Positions 32,547-64,000 of a stretch of DNA of 64,000 nucleotides are shown one piece after another. A program made the translations under genes and the position numbers. Location: NCBI GenBank assembly GCA_002269645.1, contig NIVC01000129.1:480755-544754 (forward strand), in the 5' to 3' direction. Numbering within the stretch: position 1 is the first letter of the stretch; the number at the start of each line of letters is the position of its first letter. Below the pieces are notes generated by a model that saw only the letters and a program-made list of their open reading frames with translations, did not search any database and was not told the DNA's origin. The DNA is from Macrostomum lignano (Eukaryota).

Positions 32547-35500
32547 ATGAACAACACAAGTTCTGCAAATTGCCTACTGCGGTGGCTTGTATGCTGCTGC
32601 TACTGCTTCTCACTTTTCACCTGCGACATCAGGTGGGATTACGTCAAGATGCCGGACTTCAGAGGCACCGAGTATATATTTCGTTACCCAATTGCTAACA
32701 CGGATCCTGTTGAATCCGACAAGTCTCTGTCGTATGCCACTTACGCCTCGAGCTGCTTTAATCTGACCGAGAACTCTCACCGAATATTTGCGCCGCTAAA
32801 TGACACCAGAGCCTTAGACGCGTTCACTAAGTTGTTTGCAGAAAAGTGAGTTAATCAATACCTTCCCCTTGTTTATATAGATGCTTATATATAATAGATT
32901 TCTATTGATGCACGAGTCCCTTGTAATTCAAACTCGATTGTCAAAACATGTCATGTTTACCCACTGAAATCATGCATCATATGTATATCAAAGCTTCACT
33001 ATTAGCAGTGTATCCGATTATCCTCACAAACCGCTTTTAACTGCAGTGGCACCGTGAGCTACGCCGTATACGACGATGAGCTCTGCACCAACTGGACCTA
33101 TCAGCCTTATTACTACACCGGAGGAGACCCGGTGCCACTGGCCTGGAACATGTTCGGGCCGACTTTCACCCCGCCAGCATCGCTGTGGGACAGTGCAGTG
33201 ATTGATTCAAAGTTTAACTTGATCGGACTGAAAAGAACTGCGAATACATTTCAGTACTCTGCCGTGGCGAATAACATTCTAATGTACCCTGTGTGCGAGT
33301 ATTTTCCATCCCGTAAGCCAGAAGTCCTTCGTTTCTGCGATGTCTGCCTGCCTGCTGTCTATCTCATTATCTGTCTGTCTCATTGTCTGTCTGTCTGTCT
33401 GTCTGTCTGTCTGTCTGTCTGTCTGTCTGTCTGTCTGTCTGTCTGTCTGTCTGTCTGTCTGTCTGTCTGTCTGTCTGTCTGTCTGTCTGTCTGTCTGTCT
33501 GTCTGTCTGTCTGTCTGTCTGTCTGTCTGTCTGTCTGTCTGTCTGTCTGTCTGTCTGTCTGTCTGTCTGTCTGTCTGTCTGTCTGTCTGTCTGTCTGTCT
33601 GTCTGTCTGTCTGTCTGTCTGTCTGTCTGTCTGTCTGTCTGTCTGTCTGTCTGTCTGTCTGTCTGTCTGTCTGAGACATGAATGACAAAAAAATCATTAA
33701 CCATTGCAGCGAATAGCTCGGCAGCGACTATCATGGGGGCTTGCAGCAATGCATCGGTTGTAGCCAGCGAGAACGGATCAATGCTAAACCAGAGCTACTG
33801 CGTGCACGACGTCCAGCAAAAACTCGACCAGGATTACAAAGGAAACGTCGGTGGCTACAGTCTGCTTTGCGAAAAAGGAGGCGGCCGCAACGCGCAGGCA
33901 GAGACCGAAGAGAAGAGAACAAAACTATGGTTTGTTTTTTTTATTTAAACCTAACGCTTTATTTAAACAAAAAATAAACAAACAAATACTGACAACCGTA
34001 AAGCATGGGTGTGGGTCATTAAGCAATAAGAAATCCCTAGTTTTCTTGTATCTATAAGTCACTTCAGTTGAGATTTTTCAGGTGTGTCAGACTCAAAATA
34101 AATAATGAAACTAAACCCTCTGAAACACATCTGACCAGGCGATTCCTCAATGAGTCCCTGAGAAATAGGGTTGCAATAGGCGAATACCTGATGTTGGCGC
34201 TCATGTTCGACACCGGCATGACCAACTGGCGACGTCAGTCCTTCTGCCTTCCCGGAACCCCCTGCCGGTCTAACATCAACAAAGACATCCTTGGCCAAGA
34301 CAAAACCAAAGGAATGATAGTGCGTTACAAATGGAAGGACTCAATGCCAAAGGAAGTAAAAAAGTCTGATTATGACCATCGGTGCGCGGTTCTGTGCACA
34401 GGTACGCGTTTTGCAGCTGTTTTTTATACTTTTTCTCATTTTCCTGTTCAACTATAGATCAGCCGATGGAGTTTTCATTTGAATTACAATTCCAAATGCA
34501 GCCATGGTTTGTCCAAATCCTCACACGGAAGTCCAACTGAGTCAAAGGCACTTAGTTTGCCCCTCCTGGAACAGCTCGCTATCGGCAGCCGAGCTTCAGC
34601 AGAATAAGCTGCCCTTTCATGAGATTGAGTACAAATGCGATTCGAATTTCGTGTTTATGGGCGCCGAATGGAACAGCAGCATCGTTAGAAAATGCACACA
34701 GGTACTATTATTAGTTGGCTACTATTGAGTCAACTTCAGTGTTAGCTAAATTTCGCTAATACTGTCTCTAAGACATGCATGTTGTTTATCCGACCGAAAG
34801 TGCAGTGCATGAGTAAGATATACTAGAATTATAAAATATTTATCCAACTTAATCCCCGCCGCTTCAGGACGCCGTGTGGGACAGTGGAATCCCGACCTGT
34901 GTGTCGCTGCCGTGCACACAGATGCCCGTCTATCCGAACGAAACAGCCGTCATAAGTAGCTTTACAGTCAGAAGCGTCACTTACAATTTTGCCGAGGGCC
35001 AGCTTCTGATGCACCTCTTGTCGAATGGAACATTTCGTCCGGGCGACAAGATCGAGATCGAGTGCAAGTCGGGGTTTACAGGCTCCAGCCAGACCGCCTC
35101 CTGCATGCCTGGCGGCAGCTGGAGCCCCGTCACCATGGATTGCAGCCCCGGATACTGTGGCGGCGTTTCCGTCCCTCCGACCGTGGCCAACTCGCAGGCC
35201 AACGCCACCCTCGGAAACACCTCCTGGGAGGGCGCCAGCCTCGCCTTCACCTGCAACACAAACTACAGCGTCAGCGGCCTGCCCAACGGATCTGTCAGCT
35301 TCGTCATCAGCTGCATCAACAGCAGCTGGACCTCGTTCGCCCACCTGAACTGCCGACCGACCGCCTGCTCGAGTCTGCCGCCGGGACTGGGAAACTCCAG
35401 CCTATACAGCTCGCTGAACCTCGAGCAGGAGCTGCAGACGGGTCTGCCGGCTTCCGGAGTGCAGGTCAACGACAGCCTCAGCTACGAGTGTCGGCCCGGC

Positions 35501-37904
35501 TTCGTTCGGACGACGCAGAACCGGCGATTGAGCATCTTCTGCAGGCTGGGAGACCGCTGGGAGCCGGACGTTCCCGGTCCGTGCCAGCTGCTCAACTGCT
35601 TACAGCCGGATGCCATCGTGCTGCAGCCTCAGGCCGCTCGCATGACCGTCATCAATGCATCGTTCAACTTTGCTAACAGCTCGCACCTGCCCTACACAAG
35701 TTTGGTGCGGCTGAGCTGCGAGGAGCCGTACTTTGCCATGCCGGGCAGCAGCGAGCTGGCCGTGTGCGGACTGTCAGACGGAGATCCGCCTGCGGCAGTG
35801 TGGCGCAGCGTCGGCTCAAATGTGGCCTTCAGCTGCCGCAGTAAGTGTAATGTGGACTAATCTCAGTGTGACAAAGTTGATAATTTCAATCGTAAGTCTT
35901 ACTTATTAAATATTGTCTGGAGTGGTAAGTGTTGTATCTGTATTTTACTAAACTAAATATAGACGTTAGAATGTCTTCAGGTACTATCGTATATTTATAC
36001 CAACTAAAAATCCCACCATATGGGCTCTAAGCCAAGCTCAATTACTCTTTTACGGAGCTAAGGGTCCGAAAAGGCTCCTTACTGATCAAAACGCTCACTA
36101 CCAAGCCAAATCTACTGATTAAAAGTTTTTAAATGATTCCAGTGGATCTAGACAGCATTTTTCTTTTCCTCACAAAGTACTGCAACAACAGCCTACTGAC
36201 AGCCAACAGGTGGGACTCGGACATGCAAACTCCATTAGCAGCCCCTAAACTTTTCCGCTAATAACCTGCCTGCCTGGTGTCTTCTCACCTTTTTAGGGCC
36301 AAAAGTCATCGACTTTGAACACAAGCCAGATAGATTTTCAAATTTTAGAACACCTGATTTACAATTTATTTTATAAATTACGGTTGATTGAATACTGATA
36401 ATGAGCCTTTTCATCAAACTCAGAGCTCTGCAACAACAGTCTCTTAGCGCAGCTGGTGGGATTCGGACTTGTCGACTTCCCCACCAGCTCCTACACGGAT
36501 CCCGACCGAGTTGCCAACGTCACCTGCCTTTCGAACGCCTTCGCTCCGCTGGCGGCGAACGTCAGTCTACAGAGCGACTCGCAGTTCTTCCTACAGGCTG
36601 TCTGCACGGCCGGTGACTGGACGGTGCTCAACCAGCAGCTGCTGCCGACATCGGAGACTCTGTGCGAGCCGAAGCCCTGTCTGTTGCCTACCAACCTGAC
36701 TCGATCTACAGCCGTGCCCAGCAACAACCTGGGAAACGTGACTACGGGAGACGGTCAGGTATACCTGCCAGTGAACAGCACCGTGGAAGTGAGGTGCTGG
36801 TCAAACAGCCGCTTTGTGGACGCGTACGCGAGCTCTCGGATGGCGACATGCGAGCTGGGTAAGATTACTTTTCGTGTATGAGTCGCTTTTTATTATCGTT
36901 ATCATTAGTTTTATTATTATTATTTTCACGTTGTTTTTTTCCTTCAAAGTCTCATAATGTGAAAAGATGTAACGTCAAGACGTTTATCAAGTTATAAAAT
37001 TGATTAGATACGACTCGCATTAAGAACAAAGATTATTGGATCGTTCTGGTGCAGCATTTCTAAATCTGAAGTTGTTTGATCCAAGCGTCTGAAAGGCACG
37101 CGAATTGAGGATCCGCAGGTTGAACAGCTGGATACATGCAAAATAGGATAGATTTTGGCGCGATGCTGGTAATACTTGTTCAGTGAGAGCAATGATACAA
37201 CGAGCTGTATATACATGTACATTAAGAACGCATTGATGTACGCACAAGTGTGATACTCGCTTGGCGAAGTAAGCAAGGCACAAGGTGGGCGGAAGTTTAA
37301 TAGTCAAGTCAGTAGTCGGTGACAACCCCCCATCACGTCAGAGTTGATCGATTTTTACTGTGTAAGGTGTTTGCTACAATAGGCCATCAAAATGAATCTT
37401 GTAAATTATTAATGCAAATTGGAAAGACGAGAAGAATTTGCTACTTTAAGGCTGTATAAACTAGTAGCATTTTATTTTACTGCTCGCTCACCAGAAAACA
37501 AAATTCATCAGATGCTATTGTGCGTAGTTTTTTTAAGCACATTATACATTATACGAGACGATCTATTTGTCACTAGTATTATGAGAATAAAAATATTCAA
37601 ACTACTGGAACGTGCAAAATTATCCCAGGTCCTCATTGGAGCGCCGGCGGCTCCATGCACTGCCAGCCGATCGCCTGTCCTGACAGCCACTTCGGTCCTG
37701 GAATCGATCCTAGCGTGCTGGCCGGTCCTCTGAACGCCTCCGTCTTGGCCAAAACTGCGATTGGTCCGTTCCTCATCGGAGACCAGGTGGTCTTCGCGTG
37801 CCGGGATAACGCCTCTTCTCCAGGCTCTGTACTGCTCAACTGCACCGCTGGGTCGGACTCCACAGCCGTGTGGAAAGCGAATGCTACCCGACCGTATTGC
37901 CCCG
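32547..37904 (+). CDS. Lectin-like/sushi (CCP) surface protein, copy A (at least 977 aa, 8 CCP modules; last exon not found)
   Basis: Exons 32547-32845, 33047-33312, 33710-33929, 34139-34401, 34502-34701, 34868-35840, 36424-36858 and 37629-37904, all phase-consistent. Signal-like N-terminus; CCP signatures such as [27 protein letters not shown] and [23 protein letters not shown]; dense NxS/T sites. Confidence 0.85.
33384..33673. repeat. (TCTG)n microsatellite, about 72 units, intronic
   Basis: Uninterrupted TCTG array in intron 2 of copy A; it produces the spurious SVCL and TDRQ ORFs. Confidence 0.95.
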
Positions 37905-63791: not shown

Positions 63792-64000
63792 ATGACTGTG
63801 AAAAAATCTGCTCGATTTCTGCTTTGCTGGCTCGTCTGCTGCTGCTGCAGTTCGGTCTGCTTTGGCTACAGGTGGGACTACATCAAGATGCCGGACTTCA
63901 AGGGCACTGAGTACATCTTCCGCTACCCGCTCAAAGATGACTTGACACAGAGTGAATACGAACATGGGGAAAAGTACCAAATATTTGCTTCGGCCTGCTT
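63792..64000 (+). CDS. Lectin-like/sushi surface protein, copy C (exon 1, runs off the window)
   Basis: [69 protein letters not shown]. 63547-64000 is near-identical to 41820-42272 (offset 21,728 across the coding part). Confidence 0.85.
   Translation, partial: MTVKKSARFLLCWLVCCCCSSVCFGYRWDYIKMPDFKGTEYIFRYPLKDDLTQSEYEHGEKYQIFASAC

Follow-up and report, generated by a model that had tools for sequence, protein, structure and literature searches.

We analysed a stretch of 64,000 nucleotides (nt) of the Macrostomum lignano genome (assembly GCA_002269645.1, contig NIVC01000129.1, positions 480,755-544,754, forward strand; hereafter the window), which carries a tandem array of genes for multi-module CCP (sushi) proteins. 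On the plus strand, three homologous first exons begin with ATGs at 32547 (gene A), 42064 (gene B) and 63792 (gene C), in agreement with a first-pass annotation of the same DNA that had placed three copies at these positions, the third visible as exon 1. Gene models of A and B, built by hand from open-frame maps of the plus strand and inspection of exon borders, show eight exons in A and twelve in B, with all frames open and all introns GT-AG. The incoming exon phases are alike in the two genes (0,2,1,2,1,0,1,1, to which B adds 1,1,1,1), as had been annotated, and exons 2, 3, 5, 6, 7 and 8 have the same length in both. Gene C is seen as exon 1 alone (63792-64000), the end of the window cutting the gene, and a tblastn search of both strands of the window with protein A returned no copy beyond these three. 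The window is eukaryotic in character, with GT-AG introns, microsatellites and retroelement debris. The exons are as follows.

32547-32845, plus strand: gene A exon 1; ATG, signal-peptide-like hydrophobic N-terminus and first half of head module D1; open reading frame (ORF) with GT donor
33047-33312, plus strand: gene A exon 2; second half of D1, ending VCEYFPS and leaving in phase 1; 266 nt, as in B exon 2
33710-33929, plus strand: gene A exon 3; opening half of head module D2; 220 nt, a length shared with B
34082-34401, plus strand: gene A exon 4; second half of D2, ending VLCT; 17 codons longer than B exon 4
34502-34701, plus strand: gene A exon 5; CCP1 for the most part (CCP1 by itself matches Sushi at E=6.7e-5)
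34868-35840, plus strand: gene A exon 6; end of CCP1 and CCP2-5; 97% nucleotide identity with B exon 6
36424-36858, plus strand: gene A exon 7; CCP6 and most of CCP7
37629-37904 (to 37928 if unspliced), plus strand: gene A exon 8; end of CCP7 and CCP8; donor after 37904
42064-42359, plus strand: gene B exon 1
42901-43166, plus strand: gene B exon 2
43579-43798, plus strand: gene B exon 3
46890-47158, plus strand: gene B exon 4
47259-47458, plus strand: gene B exon 5; CCP1
49977-50949, plus strand: gene B exon 6; end of CCP1 to CCP5
51111-51545, plus strand: gene B exon 7; CCP6-7
51873-52148, plus strand: gene B exon 8; end of CCP7 and CCP8
52236-52667, plus strand: gene B exon 9; CCP9-10; copy of the exon-7 type
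53105-53380, plus strand: gene B exon 10; CCP11; copy of the exon-8 type
53467-53898, plus strand: gene B exon 11; CCP12-13; synonymous divergence (dS) of 0.03 from exon 9
54271-54546, plus strand: gene B exon 12; CCP14
63547-64000, plus strand: 245 nt upstream of gene C and its exon 1; ATG at 63792; 96.3% identity with B 41820-42272; truncated by the window end

The predicted A and B proteins begin with a hydrophobic, cysteine (Cys)-rich, signal-peptide-like N-terminus, which the first-pass annotation had also read as a signal peptide. A head of ~340 amino acids follows, composed of two Cys-containing modules, D1 (exons 1-2) and D2 (exons 3-4). D1 has ~160 residues and 3 Cys, and closes with VCEYFP at the end of exon 2, while D2 is a phase 1-1 unit of 164-181 residues with 7-8 Cys that closes with VLCT; its motif L(L/F)CExGGGRxAQAExxEKRTKLW is encoded in exon 3. 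The VCEYFP ending and the LC..GG..A..E motif had both been picked out before and are indeed present. N-x-S/T sequons number 35 in A and 50 in B. The two modules gave no signal when aligned with each other in hhalign, the best match being 15 residues long (E=0.057). Pfam searches with the head modules and with two database proteins of this family, P0001 and P0002, found no family at E<=1, and the PDB, queried by sequence with the head profile, with D1 and with D2, yielded no chain at E<=10; in some searches the head queries were P0001 and single-exon products instead of the spliced A and B proteins. As judged by these comparisons, the head appears to be an orphan with no detectable relative outside the family, and it is the new element of these proteins.

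The domain composition of the stalk is evident from its periodicity: A contains 8 and B 14 four-Cys CCP-type modules of 68-82 amino acids, each with a Trp between Cys3 and Cys4, which bears out the module numbers given earlier. The stalk Cys number 33 in A (8x4+1) and 58 in B (14x4+2, one of them within the read-through tail described below). Pfam Sushi (PF00084) matches the A stalk at 7.2e-26 over four stretches, in modules 1-4 only, and A modules 5-8 taken singly gave no Sushi match. The distal modules of a paralog, P0006, do pass the Sushi threshold cumulatively (25.8 bits). In hhalign comparisons with modules 1-4, the distal modules gave weak similarity for type 7 (P=7e-4) and type 8 (4e-3), and none of significance for types 5 and 6. 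We interpret the distal modules as degenerate CCPs. All distal stalk exons are of phase 1-1, so that exon skipping would stay in frame, and stalk-length isoforms produced in this way are possible.

In both genes the last CCP exon ends in phase 1. Reading through past exon 8 of A gives PGKKLLTE and a stop at 37926-37928, and reading through past exon 12 of B gives GECFDAARR and a stop. The first-pass annotation had assigned B a hydrophobic tail (ORF 54733-54957, ending ...LLFFPLLLCCLLLASC before the stop), which we rejected because the phase-1 donor of exon 12 cannot enter that frame. Another hydrophobic tail, of 20 amino acids, is phase-compatible in B: an acceptor CACGCAG/CT at 54746/54747 leads to AFSLILLISLNLTIPVCLVI and a stop, with no cytoplasmic part, and an acceptor 7 nt further on leads to VSFSSSR and a stop.

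54747-55135, plus strand: candidate terminal exon of B; phase-compatible acceptor, AFSLILLISLNLTIPVCLVI and a stop; first AATAAA at 55130

A tail exon common to A and B, searched for downstream of both genes, was not found, and A has no counterpart of the B tail. The UniRef models of the family end at ...PYC(P). From these ends, the proteins may be secreted, or tethered by a short hydrophobic or glycosylphosphatidylinositol (GPI)-type tail. Some 50-70 nt 3' of the last CCP exon, in both A (37950-37990) and B (54585-54625), lies a conserved doubled donor-like motif, GGTAAGTNAAGC..GGTAAGTG, which may serve alternative splicing; attempts to derive a mini-exon from it gave none that was consistent.

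All detectable relatives come from M. lignano, as expected for the lineage-specific tandem family of extracellular CCP proteins with varying stalk length that had been proposed. A word-indexed search of 5.8 billion proteins with the A head returned P0001 and P0002 only, and an exhaustive phmmer search of 1.84 billion cluster representatives with P0001 returned three matches, P0002 and two short fragments, all of this family; neither search revealed a conserved single-copy ortholog outside Macrostomum. P0001, which the database flags as a product of the window, is 100% identical to the product of gene C exon 1 over that exon, and is thus a head-only model of copy C. P0002, listed by UniRef as A0A1I8JCK7 under the erroneous name 'Conjugal transfer protein', has 94% identity with C, and a single amino acid separates P0003 from B exon 3. 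P0004 crosses the junction between D2 and CCP1 (...VLCTAMTCPSP...), which shows head and stalk joined in an independent gene model. Stalk queries match only M. lignano 'Sushi domain-containing protein' fragments (P0005-P0009), the UniRef sushi entries of the family being A0A1I8HDW6, A0A1I8JBY5, A0A1I8H3R6, A0A1I8JBS7 and A0A1I8HRL6. Together with A0A1I8JCK7, these entries belong to the one family and share 68-95% identity with parts of A, B and C, certain stretches matching B at 100%; unlike the genes described here, they are uncharacterised fragments of either head or stalk, and none of them shows the two parts combined. Outside the array, the family has at least two or three more members that are distinct paralogs or homeologs (P0004, P0006/P0008, P0007, P0009). 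Uncharacterised, lineage-restricted CCP families are common in invertebrate genomes, as are orphan domains in flatworms, and Macrostomum is poorly sampled in databases. Our literature searches found no paper on the family. The kind is familiar, a lineage-specific tandem family of multi-CCP extracellular proteins, and the database holds it only as split, partly misnamed fragments.

Comparison of A with B separates the genes into parts of different history. Exons 1-5 have a saturated dS (>1.1) with a ratio of nonsynonymous to synonymous divergence (dN/dS) of 0.16-0.25, whereas dS falls to 0.09 in exon 6 (dN/dS 0.12) and 0.15 in exon 7 (dN/dS 0.19). The A and B head proteins are 63% identical, and by these measures are old paralogs under purifying selection. 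The first-pass annotation had described variable heads and a diversified recognition system; the A-B head exons fit ordinary purifying selection instead, with no sign in dN/dS of gene-wide diversifying selection. Exon 1 of B and C differs little (dS 0.026, dN/dS about 1.2 from few changes), and four of its five amino acid differences fall in one short loop (TKSDFEDG vs TQSEYEHG). The 96.3% identity of B and C across 245 nt upstream and exon 1 stops at this upstream limit, ~245 nt before the ATG, and the heads are 84.7% identical; B and C are thus not haplotype or assembly duplicates, which had been raised as a possibility.

Near-identity between A and B in exon 6 (97%, 34868-35840 and 49977-50949) and exon 7 (95.6%, 36424-36858 and 51111-51545) stops 2-8 nt from the exon borders. 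The introns flanking these exons cannot be aligned between the genes, and their lengths differ by a factor of up to 15 (166 vs 2518 nt and 583 vs 161 nt). Because similarity ends at the exon borders while the flanking introns are unalignable, the pattern points to homogenisation of exons 6-7 by exon-limited gene conversion; one idea for the sharp limits is that conversion was confined to regions still homologous. The longer stalk of B, in turn, arose by tandem duplication of a three-CCP unit, in two layers. The older is a copy of the exon 7+8 unit, ~85% identical, and the younger is a segmental duplication that includes introns, with exons 9 and 11 separated by a dN/dS of 0.30 at their low dS.

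51779-53900, plus strand: recent tandem segmental duplication in B; 51779-52669 vs 53005-53900, 94% identical including introns, period ~1.23 kb, adding one 3-CCP unit

Among the UniRef proteins, P0005 is a B-type form with 8 CCPs, whose exon 7 corresponds to B exon 7 at its 5' end and B exon 11 at its 3' end and is followed by an exact B exon 12. It may be the product expected from unequal crossing-over, the ancestral state, or a collapsed assembly.

Taken together, these observations make it probable that the array encodes a Macrostomum-restricted tandem family of extracellular, heavily N-glycosylatable binding proteins in which a CCP rod carries a two-module orphan head. The signal peptide would direct the proteins into the secretory pathway, and the mature protein would carry the ~340-residue head on the tip of a rod built from 8 (A) or 14 (B) CCP modules. 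From this architecture, the head would most likely be the ligand-binding end, and the rod a spacer setting its reach; none of the tests run indicates glycan binding by the head. The sequence comparisons show that the family has evolved by old divergence of the heads under purifying selection and exon-limited homogenisation of the proximal stalk, with stalk length altered by tandem duplication, and possibly also loss, of the three-CCP exon unit. Similar changes are known from complement receptor 1 (CR1), a member of the RCA family of long CCP rods, whose long homologous repeats vary in number through tandem duplication of, or unequal crossing-over between, multi-CCP units, with homogenised repeats; here the unit comprises three CCPs. 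RCA proteins differ in that they have no separate N-terminal head and carry their binding sites in the CCPs; the distal modules described here are very divergent CCPs, and neither complement components nor a related function are evident here. Ciona vCRL1 and Botryllus fester, lineage-specific CCP-bearing recognition receptors of invertebrates, are likewise taxon-restricted extracellular CCP proteins and multigene or variable; they are, however, polymorphic transmembrane receptors, and no polymorphism, transmembrane region or allorecognition link is shown for the M. lignano proteins.

Four points weigh against this interpretation. The fold of the head was not recovered by AlphaFold2, which with 4-5 close relatives as the sole alignment gave predicted local distance difference test (pLDDT) scores of 29.4 for the whole head and 32.0 for D2, and a Foldseek search with the low-confidence D2 model returned noise. 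The 3' ends of the gene models are provisional. The 8-CCP form P0005 could be a collapsed assembly and not a real allele. Finally, CCP modules themselves bind ligands in many CCP proteins, and by analogy the head need not be the binding end.

The first-pass annotation took the head modules to be highly divergent C-type lectin-like domains, and the proteins to be selectin-like receptors for glycan recognition or adhesion, which we regard as unlikely. Several resemblances seen by eye speak for it: a W-x-Y at the mature N-terminus, C..GGG..A.AE..EK and a possible N-terminal Cys pair in D2, terminal VCE and LCTA in the head modules, and YAVYDDxLCTNWTY where C-type lectin domains carry WIGLxD...W.W, with LALMF and YAVYD occupying the WIGL position. 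Systematic comparisons, however, gave no C-type lectin signal. Pfam Lectin_C did not match the heads at E<=1, and the PDB searches above were equally negative. Against a C-type lectin profile assembled by hand from seven sequences, hhalign assigned D1 and D2 a probability of 0.2-0.3%, and in hmmsearch, a hidden Markov model (HMM) search, their scores lay inside the shuffle distribution, 15-96 of 300 shuffles scoring at least as high. Neither EPN/QPD nor WND occurs in the head alignment, D1 is limited to 3 Cys, and the final two Cys of D2 lie 3 residues from each other, where canonical C-type lectin domains have a spacing of ~8. E-, P- and L-selectin do share with these proteins an N-terminal non-CCP head on a stalk of variable CCP number and are extracellular glycoproteins. 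They differ in having one head module instead of two and an EGF module between head and CCPs, of which Pfam found no match here, CCP1 (A-MVCPNP) directly adjoining the end of D2 (VLCT); in addition, the relatives here are confined to Macrostomum, and no transmembrane or cytoplasmic tail is verified. On present sequence evidence, the lectin claim for the heads is unsupported, a C-type lectin fold being conceivable at the level of structure only, and the selectin label fails because neither of the two defining features tested, a recognisable C-type lectin domain and an EGF module, was found.

It is also conceivable, if rather improbable, that function resides in the CCP array, which would act as a scaffold for protein binding or as a regulator, in the manner of complement regulators, C. 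elegans LEV-9 and Drosophila Hig, with the head as an accessory or oligomerisation module. CCP2-5 are the most conserved part across all paralogs (98% amino acid identity between A and B, with identical ends in P0006 and P0007), and such strong homogenisation or constraint in the proximal stalk suggests function. The head exons are likewise under purifying selection, however, and a stalk length varying freely between 8 and 14 modules fits a spacer better than a specific set of binding sites. A further reading, in which a single gene appears several times through errors of assembly or as haplotypes, is scarcely credible, and for A, B and C it is effectively refuted. As a neopolyploid, a hidden tetraploid with subgenomes that are hard to assemble (PMC5704211, PMC10733133), M. 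lignano is expected to have additional near-identical copies, of which P0002 (resembling C) and P0003 (resembling B) are examples, but A, B and C stand in tandem on one sequence, differ in introns, transposon insertions and exon numbers, and have heads only 63% (A/B) and 85% (B/C) identical, with a head-exon dS above 1 between A and B and upstream homology between B and C that ends 245 nt before the ATG.

Repeats and transposon remnants lie within and between the genes. Intron 2 of A contains a (TGTC)n microsatellite of 83 copies (33341-33673), a short 16-nt tandem repeat lies 3' of A (38770-38880), and a 22-nt tandem repeat of 11 copies lies between B and C (61870-62113). Intron 3 of B holds a retrotransposon remnant of the non-long-terminal-repeat (non-LTR) type, and a second RNase-H-like remnant seems to be present in intron 5 of B (~48460-49150).

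44163-45867, minus strand: 3' part of a degraded, frameshifted non-LTR retrotransposon in B intron 3; RNase H 1.5e-6, zf-RVT 6e-4; accounts for a 66% GC block

Upstream of the CCP array, on the minus strand, a 1676-amino-acid open frame rich in Thr, Ser, Pro, Ala and Gly (9654-14681) looks like a mucin-type exon; its repeats comprise 71 copies of a 54-nt (18-residue) unit at 10531-14362 and a 21-nt array at 9803-10325. The minus-strand ORFs 5241-6227 and 23592-24479 are 58% identical over 244 amino acids (E=2e-97), neither has a Pfam match, and the latter ends in a hydrophobic, transmembrane-like segment. This pair and the repeat arrays (9803-14362; 26515-26882/28307-28955) suggest that a second tandem duplication is present, in this case of a gene for a mucin-like membrane protein. 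A 318-amino-acid ORF at 19953-20906 (minus strand), with several hydrophobic segments and no Pfam match at E<=0.01, looks like a putative multi-pass (7TM-like) membrane protein.

For the family itself, one further proposal, which we put forward as speculative and hold to be of low probability, is that the head has an unseen extracellular fold, or is a C-type lectin-like domain diverged past sequence recognition, and that the family serves Macrostomum-specific recognition of microbes, mates or self/non-self. A repertoire would then be generated by divergence of paralog heads, with short hypervariable loops such as DDLT(K/Q)S(D/E)(F/Y)E(D/H)G, and stalk length would be adjusted through gain and loss of three-CCP units and possibly through in-frame skipping of phase 1-1 exons. 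Present M. lignano annotations split the family into head-only and sushi-only pieces, one of them misnamed, which the gene models given here correct. The locus is a compact example of old head divergence, exon-limited concerted evolution of a stalk and change of stalk length by exon-unit duplication, and a new binding fold in the head, if true, would define a flatworm-specific class of extracellular receptors in a model organism for regeneration and reproduction.

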